DNA from: Guillardia theta CCMP2712
Lineage: Eukaryota; Protista; Cryptophyta
NCBI RefSeq assembly: GCF_000315625.1
Contig: NW_005434669.1
Coordinates: 695,638-759,637 of the forward strand
Direction: 5' to 3'
Length of the DNA: 64,000 nt
A program made the position numbers and the translations under genes. A model generated the notes under the pieces. The model did not search any database, was not told the DNA's origin, and saw only the letters and a list, made by a program, of their open reading frames with translations. This document shows positions 11,641 through 64,000 of the stretch, piece by piece; positions within the stretch are counted from its first letter, which is position 1, and every line of letters starts with the position of its first letter.

Positions 11641-12436
11641 GGTGAGTAAATTGGCTCATTTAGCTGTACTGGTATCACGATGCTCGTTGCTTGCCCCCCT
11701 CAGTGCTGTCTACGTGGCTTGCCGCGCGGCCCGCGGACGGTGGGCTGGCACTGAGTGTAGACCGACTCGGAGATTTCAGTGACTGGCAGAAGGTAAAAAG
11801 GGTCTGGTTGCCAGCAGTGCTGCCGGGTTACTTTTGTGAGTCCGTACCGTGATCGCTTTTGTTGCAGTGCTGTGTGCGCCTATGCCCAGTGACGTTTTTG
11901 CTTGTTTCTGCTTTCTTCTGGCCTTGAGGCACTCGCGTGGCCGGCCCGTCAAGTACCGTCTGACCAGCCAATCATACTGCCGGGTCACGGACATGGCGGC
12001 CCTCTCCGGGGCCTCACACAGCCTGGACGTTCACTGCTCAGCCGGTCCCCCGGGCCAGCCCCCGGGCACCGTCACGCCGCCGGACTGCCGCAGTGCAGCG
12101 CGGCCCCCGGGCCCGGCCAGTTGACTGAGGTGGTTGGACTGACTCCCGTTGCCGGTGGGTTCACTGACGTGTTGATAGCACGGGAGGGAGGGGTGGGTTG
12201 CTTCCCTTTGAGGGTGGGGGTACATCTAGTAACACCCCCCCTGGCACTCCCCACCCCCCGCTAATTTTCTTCGCACGAGGAATAACCCCTCCAACCCCGA
12301 ACCGAAGGTTGGAACTCCATGGAGATAGGGTAGTGTAGGGTAGGGTCAGATCGCTTTTAAAAGTGTGGGCGGGGTACTAGAGAGATATACCACCCCACCC
12401 CAAACCAAAGGTTGTCAGACAATGGCAACAGAGCAG

Positions 12437-13380
12437 GATAGAGGATAGAGGATAGAGGATAGAGGATAGAGGATAGAGGATAGAGGAAAGAGGATAGAGG
12501 ATAGAGGATAGAGGATAGAGGATAGAGGATAGAGGATAGAGGATAGAGCATAGAGGATAGAGGATAGAGGATAGAGGATAGAGGATAGAGGATAGAGGAT
12601 AGAGGATAGAGGATAGAGGATAGAGGATAGAGGATAGAGGATAGAGGATAGAGGATAGAGCATAGAGGATAGAGGATAGAGGGGAGTATCTAGAGGATAG
12701 AGGATAGAGCAGTAGAGGTGGAGGATAGAGGATAGAGGTGGAGGATAGAGGATAGAGGATAGAGGATAGAGGATAGAGGATAGAGGATAGAGGATAGAGG
12801 ATAGAGGATAGAGGAAGAGGAGTAGAGGATAGAGGATAGAGGATAGAGGATAGAGGATAGAGGATAGAGGATAGAGGATAGAGGATAGAGGATAGAGGGT
12901 GAGGATAGAGGATAGAGGATAGAGGATAGAGGATAGAGGATAGAGGATAGAGGATAGAGGATAGAGGATAGAGGATAGAGGATAGAGGATAGAGGATAGA
13001 GGATAGAGGATAGAGGATAGAGGATAGAGGATAGAGGATAGAGGATAGAGGATAGAGGATAGAGGATAGAGGATAGAGGATAGAGGATAGAGGATAGAGG
13101 ATAGAGGATAGAGGATAGAGGTAGCAGGCAGGTAGAAGGTAGAGGATAGAGGGTACAGGAGGTAGAGGAATAAAGGATAGAGGGAGAGTGTAGAAGGTAG
13201 AGGACAGAAGGTAGGAGGACAGAGGGTATAGGAGGTAAAGGATAGAGGGAGAAGGTAAAAGGTAGAAGGTAGAGGACAGAGGGTAGGAGTATAGAGGATA
13301 GAGGACAGAGGGTAGGAGGTATAGGATAGGAGGATAGGAGGATAGAGGACAAGAGGTAGAGCGTGAGGATAGGAGGATAA
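12437..13380 (+). repeat. (GATAGAG)n heptamer satellite, nearly pure to ~13120, then degenerate
   Basis: Directly visible; it produces the spurious SSILYPL-repeat ORFs. Confidence 0.98.
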
Positions 13381-13443
13381 ACGAAAAGAGGTAAAGCAAA
13401 GACTGAAGAGAGAGACAAATGAAAGCAGACACGACAAGCAAAG

Positions 13444-14414
13444 ATGCTGTTTGCCATGAGACGGAGGTACCTGAGTAAGATGAGAAACTCTTACATGTAC
13501 AATGCAGACCAGATCCGTCAAAAGTTGCCAGAGACACAAAAGGAAGAAGAAAGGCACACCTAATGTTCAAATGTTTCCCCTTCCTATCTAAGCAGAAATC
13601 TGCGAAGCCTTCACAAGGTAATGGTAGTTTCAAGGTTGCTGGAGGAGGTTGATGTGGTTGAGTCAGATTTTCCTCGAGAGGACGAGCAGGACACCAGCAG
13701 AAAGGTGCAGCAGGCCGCAAGCCCAAAGGCCGGGACGAGCAAATTTGGAGCAACACCAGACAAGAAAGCAGGAGACGGAGAGGATACGGCAACCAGCAGC
13801 ATCCCGTCACCAGCGAGCAACGGTATCCATACGCAGGCGCAATGGGCACGGGTGCAGCTGAGCGAGCAGTCGAAGAAGCACCAAGAGAAGAAGAGCAACT
13901 TCGACTCCTCCGCTGTCTCCAAACAAGCTCAGTGGGCGCGTGAGCAGCTGAACGCGCAAGCGAAGAATCAGCAGGTGGAGAAAGAGAAGTTCGACTCCAA
14001 TTCCGTCTCTCAACAAGCGCGCTGGGCGCGTGAGCAGTTGAGCGCTCGAGCCAACCAAGAAAGGGCAAAAGAAACGACCTTTGACACAGGAGCTGTCTCT
14101 AAACAAGCCAAGTGGGCAAAAGAGCAACTTAGGCTGCAGAATCAAGATGAACTTCCCAACGAGTTGTCGGATTATGACGTTTCAGGTCAAAAATCCTTGG
14201 TTCATGCAGAAAAGGCATCGGGGTTTGGAGAGGAAGAAAGCGAGGAGAATCAAGCTCAGTCAGGTAATTCCTGCGATTTCTATTTCTCTGTTTCACCATC
14301 CCTCTCGTGACAGACCTCGAACTCGTGGACTCGCAAGTTGCACCAACTCTGGAAGATGAAAACTGTTTTTCGCAAACCGACAAGTCTCTAAGCAAGTCTC
14401 CACCTGCTTCCTAG
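13444..14414 (+). CDS. Hypothetical protein with 30-aa tandem repeats (FD..AVS.QA.WAREQL)
   Basis: ORF 13621-14310 with repeats every 90 nt (13837, 13927, 14017, 14107); flanking exons and start are tentative. Confidence 0.55.
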
Positions 14415-55369: not shown

Positions 55370-58300
55370 ATGGGCTGCGGTTCATCGACACAGTCGAGTC
55401 AAGTGGCTCCGAACAACAATGTCCAGTCGAATAATACAGGCCATGTGAAAGTAGAAGCAGCGAAAGACAATGCCATTCGCCCGGATATCAAAAGTTCAGA
55501 TACAATGAAGTCAAATGTTGCCTTGAAGCAAACGATCAATGCAGAGACACCCACTACCTCCCTCGTGAAGGACAGCAACGCCAAAGGAAACGAAGAAACA
55601 ACAGGTCGGCAGAACCCTCCAGACACCCGCACAGAAATACAAGAGAAACTTAAGGATCTGAAGAGCTCCAAGACTGATTTCTGCGCCTTGCAGGATATTG
55701 AAGACAACAATGAGCAACCTGCCGAAGATTGGCTCCCAGAATACTTGCCGCAAAATGTTATCCCTCCGCACTTGGAACACAACACAACCTTTTCATCTAG
55801 AGGAACGCGGACCAGCAAGGCAAGCATTCTTCAGAAGCAAAAAACAATCAGAAAAACAAAGATCGTGTGTACCATGGGCCCCGCCTGCTGGAGCGAAGAG
55901 GTCATCGGTAAGCTGCTCGACGCAGGGCTCAACATCGCAAGGTTCAACTTCTCGCATGGGTCCCACGAGGGCCACCTGGAGGTGCTCGAGCGCTTCCGAG
56001 GCGTGTGCGCCTCCAAGGGCAGCCATGCGGCGGTGCTGCTAGACACCAAAGGGCCGGAGATCAGGACGGCGATGCTGCGGGAGCACAAGCCGATCCTGCT
56101 GACCAAGGGGCAGGAGATCATCGTGGAGGCAGTAGGGGACGAGTACAGCAGCTGGGAGGGCTACAAGGACGAGTCGGAGACGCGGATAGGACTGTCGTAC
56201 GCGAAGCTGTGCCAGAGCGTGAGGCCGGGCAACAGGATTCTGCTTGCGGACGGATCGATCGTGATTGAGGTCGCGGAGATACGGAGCGAGCGGGAGCTCA
56301 GGGGCGTGGTGCTCAACGAGAAAGAGCTCGGGGAGCGGAAGAACTGCAACCTGCCCGGAGTGAAGGTCGACATCCCCGTGCTGACGGCAAAGGACATCGA
56401 CGACGTGCAGAACTTCTGCGCGAAGCACAAGATGGACTTTGTTGCCGCCTCGTTTGTGCAGACCGGGGAGGACGTGAAGCTGATCCGGAGAACGCTGGAC
56501 GAGGCGGGAGGGCAGGATGTGAAGATCATCAGCAAGATCGAGAACGAGGCGGGGCTTGAGAACATCGACGACATCATCCGGGAGACAGACGGAGTGATGG
56601 TAGCGAGGGGCGATCTCGGGATGGAGATCCCGTCGGAGAAAGTAGCGCTTGCCCAGAAGATGATCATCACGAAGTGCAACATTGCTGGGAAGTTTGTGAT
56701 CACAGCGACTCAGATGCTGGAGAGCATGGTGAAGAATCCGCTACCGACACGGGCGGAGATGGTGAGAGATAGAGGAGGAGGGAGGAGGGGGAGGGGAAGG
56801 GATGGGGAGGGGAGGGGAGGGGAGAGGGGAGAGGAAAGACGATAACGTTTGTGTACAGACGGACGTAGCGAACGCGGTGTTTGACGGGACGGACTGTGTG
56901 ATGCTATCAGGAGAGACAGCCAACGGGAGCTTTCCGGACACAGCGGTGGAGACGATGGCGTCGATTGTAGCCAATGCTGAGCTTGGAATTGATTACTATT
57001 CGCAATATGGGTTTATCAAGCAGCTTAATTTTTTGTCCTCCAAAGGTTTGTCCATTGACGAGTCAATTTTGGCCTCCGTTTCCAAAAGTGCAATTGAATT
57101 CTCTGAAGATTTAGACGGGAATGGAGTTATTGATTCCGACGAGGTAGCGGTTGTGATTGTTTTTACTGCAAGTGGTCGATCTGCCGATATTGTCTCCAAA
57201 TATCGTCCTTCGGGACCAGTCCTCGTTGTATCAGACAAAGATGAAGTGATCAAGAAGACAAATTGTCGATTTGGTCAACACGGATACAAAATAGAATCTC
57301 TGCAAATTGGATCTCTTACTTTGAAAGAAAAGATGAAGCTTGTTTTGGACGAAGTGGTACGGCGCGGATATCAAGACGGATTCATAGTTCCAGAAAAACA
57401 CGTTCTGGCAGTCTGTGGTGTCCACGAAGTATCTGCAGATCAGACTGCAAATGTGTCATATGTCGAAGGCCAATCGGAAAAACGAAATCCTCTTTTATAT
57501 CTGAATCCAGGAAAGCTGGGATATATTCAATCCCTGATCACCACTAGAATACACAAGGATTTGCTTGTTAAGAAAGCCCAGAACCGAAGGGCAACAAAGA
57601 TCGTGTGTACCATGGGCCCCGCCTGCTGGAGCGAAGAGGTCATCGGTAAGCTGCTCGACGCAGGGCTCAACATCGCAAGGTTCAACTTCTCGCATGGGTC
57701 CCACGAGGGCCACCTGGAGGTGCTCGAGCGCTTCCGAGGCGTGTGCGCCTCCAAGGGCAGCCATGCGGCGGTGCTGCTAGACACCAAAGGGCCGGAGATC
57801 AGGACGGCGATGCTGCGGGAGCACAAGCCGATCCTGCTGACCAAGGGGCAGGAGATCATCGTGGAGGCAGTAGGGGACGAGTACAGCAGCTGGGAGGGCT
57901 ACAAGGACGAGTCGGAGACGCGGATAGGACTGTCGTACGCGAAGCTGTGCCAGAGCGTGAGGCCGGGCAACAGGATTCTGCTTGCGGACGGATCGATCGT
58001 GATTGAGGTCGCGGAGATACGGAGCGAGCGGGAGCTCAGGGGCGTGGTGCTCAACGAGAAAGAGCTCGGGGAGCGGAAGAACTGCAACCTGCCCGGAGTG
58101 AAGGTCGACATCCCCGTGCTGACGGCAAAGGACATCGACGACGTGCAGAACTTCTGCGCGAAGCACAAGATGGACTTTATCGCCGCCTCGTTTGTGCAGA
58201 CCGGGGAGGACGTGAAGCTGATCCGGAGAACGCTGGACGAGGCGGGAGGGCAGGATGTGAAGATCATCAGCAAGATCGAGAACGAGGCGGGGCTTGAGAA

Positions 58301-61300
58301 CATCGACGACATCATCCGGGAGACAGACGGAGTGATGGTAGCGAGGGGCGATCTCGGGATGGAGATCCCGTCGGAGAAAGTAGCGCTTGCCCAGAAGATG
58401 ATCATCACGAAGTGCAACATTGCTGGGAAGTTTGTGATCACAGCGACTCAGATGCTGGAGAGCATGGTGAAGAATCCGCTACCGACACGGGCGGAGATGG
58501 TGAGAGATAGAGGAGGAGGGAGGAGGGGAAGGGATGGGGAGGGGAGGGGAGGGGAGAGGGGAGGGGGGAGAGGAAAGACAATAACGTTTGTGTACAGACG
58601 GACGTAGCGAACGCGGTGTTTGACGGGACGGACTGTGTGATGCTATCAGGAGAGACAGCCAACGGGAGCTTTCCGGATACTGCAGTTTCGATCATGAGTG
58701 CTATCGTTGTCAATGCTGAAAGGGGAATAGACAAACCGGACGTGTACAATTTTATTCGCAATTGGACACCAAAACCAATGAGCTTCAGAGAAACCATTAC
58801 TTCCTCTGCCATTCAAGCTTCTTTCGATATGCGTGCGGCTCTGATAGTTGTAATTACAAATGATGCCCGTACTGCGAGTCTGATTTCAAAATGGAAGCCG
58901 TTCTCGCCAGTCATCGTTGTCACTTCATCGAAGTCGCTAACAAAGTCGTGCAGCAGTAGGTACGGCCTCCATCCTTTTTACATGGAAGAAATACCATCTA
59001 TGCAAGAAACGATGCGACTCGTTGTTGACTTTGCAAAGCAAAAACAGCTGGCTAAATTCGAAAACAAGGAATTGGAAAATGGTCAGATCGTAGTCGTTTC
59101 GGGTAGAAACATGAACCTAACTGGCACTTTGTTACAACTGACTACTTATCTGTTTGGCGAAGAGGCGAAAAACCTTGAAGAGAATCATGGCTACGAGGGA
59201 AAACACACATTTACCTTCAAATCAACAAAAATTGGACTTGACTTGGTATGTGAACCAGTTTTTTCAGTGCGCAAAACAAAGATCGTGTGTACCATGGGCC
59301 CCGCCTGCTGGAGCGAAGAGGTCATCGGTAAGCTGCTCGACGCAGGGCTCAACATCGCAAGGTTCAACTTCTCGCATGGGTCCCACGAGGGCCACCTGGA
59401 GGTGCTCGAGCGCTTCCGAGGCGTGTGCGCCTCCAAGGGCAGCCATGCGGCGGTGCTGCTAGACACCAAAGGGCCGGAGATCAGGACGGCGATGCTGCGG
59501 GAGCACAAGCCGATCCTGCTGACCAAGGGGCAGGAGATCATCGTGGAGGCAGTAGGGGACGAGTACAGCAGCTGGGAGGGCTACAAGGACGAGTCGGAGA
59601 CGCGGATAGGACTGTCGTACGCGAAGCTGTGCCAGAGCGTGAGCCGGGCAACAGATTCTGCTTGCGGACGATCGATCGTGATTGAGTCGCGGAGATACGG
59701 AGCGAGCGGGGAGCTCAGGGCGTGGTGCTCAACGAGAAAGAGCTCGGGGAGCGGAGACTGCAACCTGCGGGGAGGGGGAGGGTGGACATCCCCGTGCTGA
59801 CGGCAAAGGACATCGACGACGTGCAGAACTTCTGCGCGAAGCACAAGATGGACTTTGTTGCCGCCTCGTTTGTGCAGACCGGGGAGGACGTGAAGCTGAT
59901 CCGGAGAACGCTGGACGAGGCGGGAGGGCAGGATGTGAAGATCATCAGCAAGATCGAGAACGAGGCGGGGCTTGAGAACATCGACGACATCATCCGGGAG
60001 ACAGACGGAGTGATGGTAGCGAGGGGCGATCTCGGGATGGAGATCCCGTCGGAGAAAGTAGCGCTTGCCCAGAAGATGATCATCACGAAGTGCAACATTG
60101 CTGGGAAGTTTGTGATCACAGCGACTCAGATGCTGGAGAGCATGGTGAAGAATCCGCTACCGACACGGGCGGAGATGGTGAGAGATAGAGGAGGAGGGAG
60201 GAGGGGAAGGGATGGGGAGGGGAGGGGAGGGGAGAGGGGAGGGGGGAGAGGAAAGACAATAACGTTTGTGTACAGACGGACGTAGCGAATGCGGTGTTTG
60301 ACGGGACGGACTGTGTGATGCTATCAGGAGAGACAGCCAACGGGAGCTTTCCGGACACAGCGGTGGAGACGATGGCGTCGATCGTAGCCAATGCTGAGAT
60401 TGGAGTGAATTACCCTCAAGTCTTTTCAAGTCTTCGAGATTTCACTCCGAAGCCAATGGGATTTATGGAATCTATGTTATGCTGTGCTGCTAAGAATGCT
60501 GTTGATTGCTACGCTGGTTTGATTGTTTTGTTTTCAAAGACTGGACGAGCGGCAAGGCTTGTTTCGAAGTATCATCCTTTTGTTCCGGTGGTGGTGATTT
60601 CAGACAATGAAAGGGTTACAAAGCAGCTCAATGCATCTTTCTCACTTTTGCCATATCCAGTTACTGAAATTCCTCAAGAACCCGACCAAATCTCAAGAAT
60701 GATGCTGGACGTCATCGATTGGGCAGTAGACAAGCAGATATGCTTGTCCGATTCTAAAGTAATCATTGTAAAAGGTGCACATGAAGCGGATGCAGATATC
60801 CAACCAACGATTCTCCTTCACAATGCTGACAATTCTGGAAGACATTTCATCCGAAGGAGGACATCTCTTCAGCATAAGCCATTCCATGTGGTACCAACAC
60901 ATAGCGTCGAGAAAACAACCTCTATAAGGTGTAACAGCATATCCCTTGATCAGATAACAAGCAAGTATCAACCTCCAAGGAAGACAAAGATCGTGTGTAC
61001 CATGGGCCCCGCCTGCTGGAGCGAAGAGGTCATCGGTAAGCTGCTCGACGCAGGGCTCAACATCGCAAGGTTCAACTTCTCGCATGGGTCCCACGAGGGC
61101 CACCTGGAGGTGCTCGAGCGCTTCCGAGGCGTGTGCGCCTCCAAGGGCAGCCATGCGGCGGTGCTGCTAGACACCAAAGGGCCGGAGATCAGGACGGCGA
61201 TGCTGCGGGAGCACAAGCCGATCCTGCTGACCAAGGGGCAGGAGATCATCGTGGAGGCAGTAGGGGACGAGTACAGCAGCTGGGAGGGCTACAAGGACGA

Positions 61301-62601
61301 GTCGGAGACGCGGATAGGACTGTCGTACGCGAAGCTGTGCCAGAGCGTGAGGCCGGGCAACAGGATTCTGCTTGCGGACGGATCGATCGTGATTGAGGTC
61401 GCGGAGATACGGAGCGAGCGGGAGCTCAGGGGCGTGGTGCTCAACGAGAAAGAGCTCGGGGAGCGGAAGAACTGCAACCTGCCCGGAGTGAAGGTCGACA
61501 TCCCCGTGCTGACGGCAAAGGACATCGACGACGTGCAGAACTTCTGCGCGAAGCACAAGATGGACTTTATCGCCGCCTCGTTTGTGCAGACCGGGGAGGA
61601 CGTGAAGCTGATCCGGAGAACGCTGGACGAGGCGGGAGGGCAGGATGTGAAGATCATCAGCAAGATCGAGAACGAGGCGGGGCTTGAGAACATCGACGAC
61701 ATCATCCGGGAGACAGACGGAGTGATGGTAGCGAGGGGCGATCTCGGGATGGAGATCCCGTCGGAGAAAGTAGCGCTTGCCCAGAAGATGATCATCACGA
61801 AGTGCAACATTGCTGGGAAGTTTGTGATCACAGCGACTCAGATGCTGGAGAGCATGGTGAAGAATCCGCTACCGACACGGGCGGAGATGGTGAGAGATAG
61901 AGGAGGAGGGAGGAGGGGAAGGGATGGGGAGGGGAGAGAGGAGGGGAGGGGAGAGGAAAGACAATAACGTTTGTGTACAGACGGACGTAGCGAACGCGGT
62001 GTTTGACGGGACGGACTGTGTGATGCTATCAGGAGAGACAGCCAACGGGAGCTTTCCGGACACAGCGGTGGAGACGATGGCGTCGATCGTAGCCAATGCT
62101 GAGTTGGTCAACAATTTCTACGCCATCTTTGCTTTCATCCGAGATTTCACTCCCAAGGTGAGATTTTTTGATTGCCGCTTTTGCTTCTCACTCTTCTTCT
62201 TCGCTTTTCCTTTCTTGGTCTTGATTCTTCAGCCATTCTCCACCAAGGAGTCAGCGGCTTCCAGCGCAGCACAAGCTTGCATTGATGGTCATGCAGACCT
62301 TGTGATCGTCTTAAGCAAGTCCGCGGAGAGCGCAAACCTAGTCTGCAAGTATCGCCCTAGTGCGCCTGTGCTGGTTGTGTCTGCGGACGAGAAGATTGTC
62401 CGGGGATCGTGCTCGCAGTTTGCCCAGTACGGGTTGTTGAAGAACGTCAAGGACATGTCGCTGGAGGACTTCAAGAAGTCCGGGGCTCTAGAGGAAGCAC
62501 TTGCCTATGCTCGCGAGAGGAAGTTGATAGGAGACAAGAGCAAGGGGGTCGTGCTGGTGGCAGAGCAGAGCGAAAAGCATCTGATCGTCTCTCATGTTTG
62601 A
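55370..62601 (+). CDS. PK: Quadruple-domain pyruvate kinase, ~2,260 aa; exons 55370-56761, 56859-58499, 58598-60177, 60276-61889, 61981-62157, 62233-62601
   Basis: Four full sets of PK motifs ([74 protein letters not shown]), joined in frame with no stop after removing phase-0 GT-AG introns; frameshifts occur only at 59641-59785. Confidence 0.9.
55856..62103 (+). repeat. Four near-identical ~1.1 kb intragenic repeats (PK A/B core + intron) starting 55856, 57594, 59276, 60984
   Basis: Nucleotide identity visible by eye, including synonymous sites and the intron. Confidence 0.97.
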
Positions 62602-62678
62602 GATCCAGATGTTTTCATGTTGCAAGCAAGCTGCTGTCTTGCTTTCTATTGTTTTTTTGGAACAAAATGTTTGTCATA

Positions 62679-64000
62679 TCAGAATTGCGACAACAGTTTC
62701 TCCATGATCATTTGTCCCTTCCTCAGGTTGAGGATTCGAATCCTCTCATTGGGCAGGTGTGCGTTGTCCGACGCTTGTCCCATGGGCAAGTGAATTGCTG
62801 GGGCCTTGAGCGTCTGCTCCAGGAAGGTCGTCACACCCCCGTAGCTTCCTCCTTCTCGCACCAGGATGGGTTCTATCCCCCACACCTCGCTCACTGCCTT
62901 GGCTGCTTGCCGGAAGATGTTGTGGTCCGTGTTGCCCAGCCACCAGCCAGACGCCTGAAGGAAGACGACGGACAGCGAGTTGGTGGAGTTCCGCTGACGA
63001 AAGAAGTCGTGGAGATGTTTCCTTAGTGCCTCCTGCAGCTGCCCGATCTCCTGCTTGGGAACGAAGTGCAAGCTCAGGCGCCCGACCACAGCCTTGGGAA
63101 TCTTGCGGAAGACTTGAGAGCGGTTGGTGGTCTCGATGCTGCTGACGCTAATCCATGGCTCTGACCACCTTGACTTGAGGATTTCTTTCCTGTCCTCCGT
63201 GCGGAGCTTGGCGACTCCGATGCTCTTGCAGTAGCTGTCGATGTCGAGCTGCAGGGCGGTGTACCTCGCCTCTTCCTCCTCCGACACCGGCTGTAACCCA
63301 ACGAGCAGCTCCTTGACCTGCATCGCTTGTTAAGGAGGACGTGGAGGTTGCGGGAGGAAGGTGAAGTGAAGGATCAGGAGGAGGTTGGAGGGGAGGACGA
63401 GGAGGGAGAGACAGGGATACCGCCAGTCGTCCTTGTTGGTCCGTGAGAGAGGCAATGAGGGCGGTCAGGTCGTGCATTGGCTCGTTGACGGCTCCTCCGT
63501 CCACTCCCGAGTGCAGATCCTTGCTTGGTCCGGTGACCCAGAGCTCGAAGTCAATGACACCCTGGTAGAAGCGCTAAGGATGAGGAGAGAGAAACAGACA
63601 GGCGAGACGAGACGAGGGAGAGAGATGAGGGTATGTGTGTGGGGAGAAGAGAGCGACGAGAGAGGAGGGAGACTCGGGGAATGTGAACTACGGGGCGGCG
63701 AAGATGAACAGAAGCGAGGAGATAGCTTGAGACAAGGAGAAGGGCAAGGAAGATGAGGAAGAGGAAGAGGAAGAGGAAGGGGAAGAGGATAATAAGGAGG
63801 AATAATAGTGCATGAGGGGGAGAATAGCGGGATAGCAGGAGGAGACTGACCCGCATTCCGTAGGTCAGGCAAGGGCGCTGGTCGTCGATCCAGTAGTTGT
63901 TGCTGATGATGATGGCCCGGCAGTTGCCGAACCAGTGCATGTGGTCGACGATGATCTCCTCAAGGCCTCGCTCGGAGAGGCTCAGGCCGCTCTCTTCCTC
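62679..64000 (-). CDS. M20 metallopeptidase, Dug2-like (3' part; continues beyond the window)
   Basis: EEESG, SNNYWIDDQRPCLTYGMR|G, KDLHSGVDGG, WWLGN, PILVREGGS, LPMGQASDNAHLPNER. Confidence 0.85.

Follow-up and report, generated by a model that had tools for sequence, protein, structure and literature searches.

A single gene of the cryptophyte Guillardia theta encodes four fused pyruvate kinase units, probably an old fusion whose product may be a pseudo-tetramer

Pyruvate kinase (PK) is a textbook allosteric homotetramer whose allosteric sites and C-C interface lie in the C-domains. An earlier note, made from sequence alone on a window of 64,000 nucleotides of Guillardia theta CCMP2712 (contig NW_005434669.1, positions 695,638 to 759,637, all coordinates below being those of the window), proposed that four complete PKs are encoded there in one polypeptide. 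A Pfam scan of the + strand at 55370-62601 matches the PK barrel (PF00224) and, behind it, PK_C (PF02887) four times over, and recovers in all four units the catalytic core with its own C-domain that the note had described. The five introns it had proposed all begin with GT and end with AG exactly at their predicted ends, and neither the listing of open reading frames (ORFs) nor the translation shows a stop or a spacer at any of the three unit junctions. The claim that the frame runs open from one ATG through all four units did not hold for the assembled sequence, which is broken in the core of unit 3. When this core is corrected from independent sequencing runs, the spliced coding sequence has 2,258 codons with a single terminal stop and its product 247.5 kDa, close to the ~2,260 aa and ~245 kDa that had been expected. 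The parts of the gene are given in Table 1.

Table 1. Parts of the four-unit pyruvate kinase gene, in window coordinates
Feature	Position	Strand	Basis
Start codon and 162-aa N-terminal extension	55370..55855	+	Translation; starts MGCGSS
W-LPEY-LP..V-PP motif in the N-terminal extension	about 55727-55768	+	Translation
Unit 1 A/B core, exon 1 part	55856..56761	+	Pfam PK 1-298/328, E 9e-107; active-site motifs kept compared with solved PKs
Core intron 1, 97 nt, purine-rich	56762..56858	+	GT..AG; homologous to the intron spliced in RNA contigs
Unit 1 A tail, C-domain 1 (TASGRSA, position-1-specific insert) and linker 1	56859..57593	+	Pfam PK_C
Unit 2 A/B core	57594..58499	+	Pfam; 2 nt differ from core 1
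Core intron 2, 98 nt	58500..58597	+	GT..AG
Unit 2 A tail, C-domain 2 (TNDARTA) and linker 2	58598..59275	+	Pfam PK_C; contig over 58648-59302
Unit 3 A/B core, frame-broken in the assembly	59276..60177	+	Alignment, run contigs
Cluster of indels and substitutions, net -4 nt, probably an assembly error	59642..59784	+	Alignment to the other cores; run contigs
Core intron 3, 98 nt, seen spliced	60178..60275	+	Joint 60176/60275 in RNA runs X2, X3
Unit 3 A tail, C-domain 3 (SKTGRAA) and linker 3	60276..60983	+	Pfam PK_C; contig over 60369-61010
Unit 4 A/B core	60984..61889	+	Pfam, core alignment
Core intron 4, 91 nt	61890..61980	+	GT..AG
Unit 4 A tail and beginning of C-domain 4	61981..62157	+	Pfam PK 299-328
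Fifth intron, 75 nt, in phase; frame stays open if retained	62158..62232	+	GT..AG; homology
C-domain 4 (SKSAESA) and stop codon 62599-62601	62233..62601	+	Pfam PK_C

In the corrected protein the PK cores start at residues 163, 710, 1238 and 1776. The linkers between units, of about 40-55 aa, are partly non-conserved and each ends in the usual eukaryotic PK N-terminal segment, so that each unit represents a complete PK. The N-terminal extension starts with Gly2/Cys3, a motif of the dual-acylation type. Core introns 1-4 all follow the same codon (gagatg, then GT), and removal of the fifth intron restores the family motif TPKP-F/M-S as found in units 2 and 3.

The PK barrel scored 357-395 bits in units 1, 2 and 4, above the gathering score, and was matched in unit 3 in two pieces (146 and 193 bits) because of the frame break; the PK_C scores of units 1-4 were 44.7, 58.6, 57.1 and 44.8 bits, with a cut-off of 28. 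The core aligns end to end with PKs of solved structure (best 3eoe, E 2e-93), and the active-site, K+ and Mg2+ motifs, including ATQMLES and PTRAE, are intact in the translation aligned to 3eoe. In PK structures these motifs serve to bind K+, Mg2+ and substrate, and the four units look catalytically competent. The C-domains, taken together with the linkers, are 28-35% identical to one another. The loop T-x-S-G-x-S/T-A binds the effector phosphate in yeast and mammalian PK, and this canonical sugar-phosphate loop is kept only in C-domain 1 (C1), the other three C-domains (C2-C4) having different residues there. The canonical homotetrameric enzymes (Toxoplasma PK1 3eoe, human PKM2, E. coli PykF) share the A, B and C domains and the active-site motifs with the G. 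theta protein, which differs from them in that its subunits are covalently joined, its C-domains vary by unit and T-x-S-G-x-S-A occurs in one of them. Identical active sites with four different C-domains had been claimed for this gene, and once the assembly error in unit 3 is set aside, equal active sites with unequal regulatory modules seems a fair description. Besides this gene, contigs 189, 45 and 8 of G. theta carry PK loci of the conventional single-unit kind.

The earlier note had left open whether multi-PK fusions are annotated in other algae, and proposed a search for repeated PK and PK_C domains. They are annotated. In a full HMMER scan of 1.84 billion protein representatives, many of the proteins matched had a further PK barrel behind a PK_C domain, and length-matched searches for proteins of 2,100-2,550 aa then found two in Chlamydomonas reinhardtii, CHLRE_05g234700v5 (PYK3, Cre05.g234700, 2306 aa) and XP_001695738.1 (2430 aa). 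Further proteins of this size come from C. incerta, C. schloesseri, Edaphochlamys, three species of Volvox, Gonium, Pleodorina, Astrephomene, Haematococcus, Sanguina, Monoraphidium minutum (2279 aa), Raphidocelis, Tetradesmus, Scenedesmus, Ulva, Ostreobium, the streptophyte alga Mesostigma and large clusters from marine metagenome-assembled genomes (MAGs). All four that were scanned have exactly four PK and four PK_C domains: P0309 (CHLRE_05g234700v5), P0323 (Monoraphidium minutum), P0322 (Mesostigma, 2248 aa) and P0302 (a MAG, 2227 aa). Shorter multi-unit pieces were found in Goniomonas, a cryptist without plastid, and in Monoraphidium neglectum, and a short cryptophyte fragment in Hanusia. 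In one of the former (P0184, Goniomonas avonlea, 780 aa) the leading partial C-domain groups with position 2 and the next unit with position 1, the reverse of the expected order, which suggests a different order of units or more than four units in that organism.

The (PK-PK_C)x4 architecture is therefore already known, being annotated in dozens of green algae and named PYK3 in Chlamydomonas, and what we add is modest: a cryptophyte orthologue with position-wise correspondence, an extreme case of gene conversion confined to the cores, and an assembly error flagged. Annotations of the family say no more than 'pyruvate kinase' or 'hypothetical protein', and the full-text literature searched gave no description of natural multi-PK chains, only gene lists naming PYK3 or PYK2 and citations of a monomeric PK described in 1989. 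The annotated G. theta model of the gene itself was not among the protein matches of our word-index searches, which were limited by length.

The closest relatives of the G. theta gene by architecture are Chlamydomonas PYK3 and its orthologues in Haematococcus, Ulva, Ostreobium and Mesostigma, which likewise carry four PK and four PK_C domains in one chain. G. theta and Chlamydomonas PYK3 have in common an insert in C1, the sequence STK-I/V-GLD in linker 2 and the lack of a tail after C4. The two also share a WxPEY.P motif that precedes core 1, and WxPEY recurs across the four-unit family. The start MGCGSS or MGC is found in Chlamydomonas PYK3 and further in Haematococcus, Mesostigma, Ulva and Pseudoscourfieldia. 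The C-domains of G. theta, a cryptophyte and not a green alga, are about 33-37% identical to those at matching positions in Chlamydomonas. A second green-algal paralogue (XP_001695738.1; 2279 aa in Monoraphidium minutum, 2278 aa in Raphidocelis) has the same (PK-PK_C)x4 plan and, as in G. theta, C-domain clades that follow position; unlike G. theta it lacks the MGC start, and its unit-2 core lies on a very long branch and is possibly non-catalytic.

For a tree of the C-domains, chains were cut into units and the part after the SGETA motif was analysed with IQ-TREE (LG+C20), with support from the SH-like approximate likelihood ratio test (SH-aLRT). G. theta C1 belongs to a clade of position-1 C-domains (support 96, starred), C2 to the position-2 group (93), where it is sister to unit 2 of the metagenomic orthologue P0001 (100, starred), and C3 to the position-3 group (89). 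Forcing the four G. theta C-domains into one clade cost a log-likelihood difference (delta lnL) of 127 (approximately unbiased (AU) test, p 9e-5), for a group that was named after the tree had been seen, though it is the natural alternative hypothesis. An independent quadruplication within the lineage is rejected by this test. The position-wise orthology of the C-domains and the shared details argue that the fusion is old and was not made in the G. theta lineage; judged by these comparisons, the four-unit gene predates that lineage, which either shares it with green algae by descent or received it entire by transfer.

The cores behave differently from the C-domains. The core blocks of about 1.1 kb, intron included, are 99-100% identical in DNA, and cores 1, 2 and 4 differ at 2-3 of 907 positions. 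The A/B core tree groups units by species and not by position, bringing together all four units of MAGb, units 1-3 of Haematococcus, units 1-3 of Chlamydomonas PYK3, and units 1 and 3 of Mesostigma, with units 1-4 of G. theta on zero-length branches. The conversion tracts begin at the first core codon, take in the intron and end in the A tail. We read this pattern as gene conversion that keeps cores and intron about 100% identical, while C-domains and linkers keep their position-specific sequence, and among the sequences compared G. theta is the most extreme case of core-only conversion: Chlamydomonas unit 4 and several green-algal cores have diverged strongly, and P0001 has the same order C1-linker-core-C2-linker-core, but its neighbouring cores clearly differ. 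The core intron is a purine-only tract of GGAGGG type which varies in length between identical flanks and must therefore have undergone slippage inside the conversion tracts. Long core branches (1.8-5.5 changes per site) with conserved neighbours were seen in unit 4 of Ostreobium (Ostb_4) and of Ulva (Ulva_4), in units 2 and 4 of Mesostigma (Mesv_2, Mesv_4), in unit 2 of the second paralogue (CreXP_2, Mmin_2) and in the unit labelled Pedi_2; catalysis may have been lost in these green-algal units, which would then be pseudo-enzymes serving regulation or assembly.

Other chains carry tandem PK units as well. Prymnesium parvum P0298 (a transcript of 1703 aa) has three PK and three PK_C domains in one ORF, with identical cores and identical first two C-domains, a concerted evolution like that in G. 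theta; its units fall among single-unit PKs, outside the four-unit family, and it therefore represents an independent fusion. Other tandem PK ORFs include the two-unit families P0161-P0167, one of which (P0166) carries an EF-hand. A PK or PK-PK is fused to an adenylate kinase domain (PF00406) in P0039, P0334 and P0218 (eukprot/ENA), P0039 and P0334 being PK-PK-adenylate kinases. These ATP-buffering combinations call flagellar enzymes to mind.

Evidence on expression, copy number and the state of unit 3 came from one DNA run (X1), two RNA runs (X2 and X3) and one raw RNA run (X22) placed on positions 58690-61010 (2,321 letters), a stretch chosen to contain a single copy of the core. A spliced joint 60176/60275 with GT..AG ends, which skips 98 nt, was seen at depth 3273 in X2 and 194 in X3 and was absent from X1, which identifies X2 and X3 as RNA and confirms the predicted splicing of the core intron. 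In these RNA runs the depth of the core intron is about 5% of exon depth. A contig of 655 nt runs without gaps over 58648-59302, from the A tail through C2 and linker 2 into 28 nt of the next core, and another of 645 nt over 60369-61010, from C3 through linker 3 into the next core; both are present in X1, X2 and X3, and both break off at the start of the four-way repeat, as is inevitable for de Bruijn contigs. From 59273 a loose end continues into the N-terminal extension of unit 1, and altogether three distinct joins of C-domain to core and the join of the N-terminus to the core are present in the independent runs. Of the C-domain-to-core junctions for which RNA evidence had been called for, those at 59200-59300 and 60850-61010 are thus covered by contigs, and the one at 57480-57620 is read by homology: it is supported by the open frame and by P0001, in which a single ORF runs C1-linker-core-C2-linker-next core with recognisably the same linkers and whose contig has further PK pieces on both sides. 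The RNA depth of two unique parts (718 and 989 in X2, 41 and 67 in X3) is roughly a fourth of that of the core, which is what equal expression of all units would give. Furthermore, DNA word depth is about 243 in the core and 47-65 in the unique C-domains, a ratio of about four, which supports four copies where the note had named fewer copies or a misassembly as grounds for rejecting its proposal.

The frame break lies in a short cluster at 59642-59784. Alignment of the four cores shows that a single G is deleted at four places, that a +1 and a -1 change compensate each other, and that 2 nt are lost at one place and gained at another, for a net loss of 4 nt; there are also five base substitutions, including G-for-C calls. 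In the spliced model of the assembly the first stop follows codon 1411, with 52 stops in all. The contigs of X1, X2 and X3 read canonically at nearly all of these positions, and the assembled variants occur in none of them; the RNA runs X2 and X3 cover every changed position, and the DNA run X1, which has no contig over 59756-59780, reads canonical in the loose ends on both sides. Since the run contigs are canonical and never show the assembled letters, the break is most likely an assembly or consensus error, and the cluster looks like a low-quality consensus patch within a collapsed repeat. Gene models built on this assembly would be truncated or split at this place. Assembly unit 3 differs from the run contigs also by single bases at 59506, 59857/59859 and 60290 (C>A, G>A, T>C, T>C), and at a codon which differs between cores as Val or Ile (gtt versus atc) the contigs show atc only. 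Such differences as there are among the cores may thus themselves be noise of the assembly or popped bubbles.

A frameshift truly present in the strain would leave a product of about 1,411 aa, two and a half units long, with the rest of unit 3 and unit 4 as a decaying remnant. It has in its favour the indels of the assembled sequence and the fact that collapsed contigs can lose a minority variant. We consider it very improbable, given that the assembled variants are in no contig of three runs and that DNA depth remains that of four copies over 59314-59781 (243-308, against 47 in C2 and 65 in C3), that the changes are mostly errors of homopolymer length within 143 nt of an otherwise 100% identical block, and that core 4, C3 and C4 show no damage, match C2 in expression level and are conserved by position. 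The near-identical 1.1-kb repeats are hard to assemble, and contigs across genes do not prove a single transcript, so that one might also suppose four adjacent but separate PK genes, or a misassembled or collapsed repeat taken for one ORF. This seems the least credible of the alternatives: the units are not separated by any stop or spacer, by a gap large enough for a promoter or by a region with polyA signals, RNA contigs cross two of the junctions, the joins named above recur in independent runs at a depth that fits four copies, and P0001 and more than 25 annotated four-unit proteins, some of them known from transcriptomes, have their units in the same order.

A single mRNA might instead give a single translation product that is cut in the linkers into four PKs of about 55-60 kDa, which would join as an obligate 1:1:1:1 heterotetramer or be sent to separate locations. 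Among other secondary algae, Euglena and dinoflagellates have polyprotein genes, and the length and partial non-conservation of the linkers would suit cleavage. A 2026 review moreover gives green-algal PKs as subunits of 56-57 kDa, those of Selenastrum forming homotetramers (PMC13409958). The three linkers, on the other hand, have no repeated cleavage motif; each is conserved by position with green algae and contains the normal PK N-terminal segment, and the units, given their diverged C-domains, would not be identical mature products. A green-algal PK is cited as a monomer in reviews (PMC8100219, PMC6181219), and the ciliary peptides of PYK3 are numbered on the full-length model, although numbering does not show size (PMC11244166). 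A polyprotein of the Euglena or dinoflagellate type, with near-identical units and a conserved cleavable linker, was rejected on account of the differing linkers and the 28-35% identity of the C-domains; cleavage in general is unlikely, though it keeps more weight than a true frameshift or separate genes.

Taken as a whole, the observations are best explained by a single nuclear gene for a four-unit PK of 2,258 aa and 247.5 kDa, an old fusion whose product is a putative pseudo-tetramer, and we hold this explanation with good though not full confidence. The chain would consist of four PK units of eukaryotic type (N-segment, A/B barrel and C-domain) behind the 162-aa extension, and would fold back on itself into a PK-like pseudo-tetramer, for which linkers of ~40-55 residues should by simple geometry be long enough. 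In such an assembly the active sites would be equal and the regulatory C-domains unequal, with the stoichiometry of the four fixed at 1:1:1:1. The single-chain arrangement is plausible and agrees with a green-algal PK described as monomeric (Knowles et al. 1989), which PMC8100219 and PMC6181219 cite under 'monomers'. A monomer of about 250 kDa is how a folded-back four-unit chain would be expected to look. The species of that monomeric enzyme, S. minutum, is now called Monoraphidium minutum, in which a four-unit PK is encoded, and we infer that this gene and the monomeric enzyme, reportedly of about 235 kDa, belong together.

Several points weigh against this explanation. The review cited above lists homotetramers of 56-57 kDa for the alga of the monomeric enzyme. 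The assembled sequence is itself frame-broken in unit 3, and the run contigs collapse the four identical cores, so that a rare variant copy could be lost and their testimony is strong evidence but not proof; nor can contigs prove one mRNA of 6.8 kb. Run X22 placed 8 reads on 58690-61010, too few to show the strand or where transcripts start and end, and junction 1 (57480-57620) and intron 5 were assigned by homology only. In the C-domain tree C4 takes no settled place, and the group tested there was, as mentioned, chosen after the tree.

As to where the enzyme acts, its Gly2/Cys3 start suggests myristoylation and palmitoylation, which would tether it to a membrane and, more tentatively, to that of the flagella, where it could regenerate ATP locally in this biflagellate. 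Chlamydomonas PYK3 is in the ciliary methylome, with a methyl-Arg at R2261 (PMC11244166), and PK is in the flagellar proteome, in which predicted myristoylated proteins are enriched (PMC2171396). A flagellar role in local ATP supply is a reasonable guess. A wider proposal is that the four-unit PK is an ancient single-chain pseudo-heterotetramer of green algae and cryptists, Goniomonas included, which is acyl-anchored at the flagellar or plasma membrane for local ATP, with conversion confined to cores and intron and selection keeping the four C-domains; this full combination is possible, but we would not yet count on it.

Next to the gene, on the - strand at 62679-64000, lies a convergent gene. 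About 78 nt (62602-62679) separate the two stop codons, and the 3' untranslated regions must therefore overlap or be very short. Elsewhere in the window, positions 12001-14000 show a strand asymmetry far above the rest (GC skew 0.43 and AT skew 0.39 in a 2-kb bin).

A natural chain of four PK subunits with equal active sites and unequal C-domains fixes both the order and the stoichiometry of its subunits, and could serve to trace the passage of allosteric signals over the A-A and C-C interfaces. The family is widespread, in green algae, Mesostigma, cryptists and marine MAGs, and under-studied, and its G. theta member provides a taxon outside the green lineage with position-wise orthology. The MGC start shared with the ciliary PYK3 of Chlamydomonas offers a testable idea of the enzyme's site of action. 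If the pseudo-heterotetramer proposal is true, the family would be a natural experiment in covalently fixed heterotropic allostery, and possibly a shared derived character, or a whole-gene transfer, linking Cryptista and Chloroplastida.

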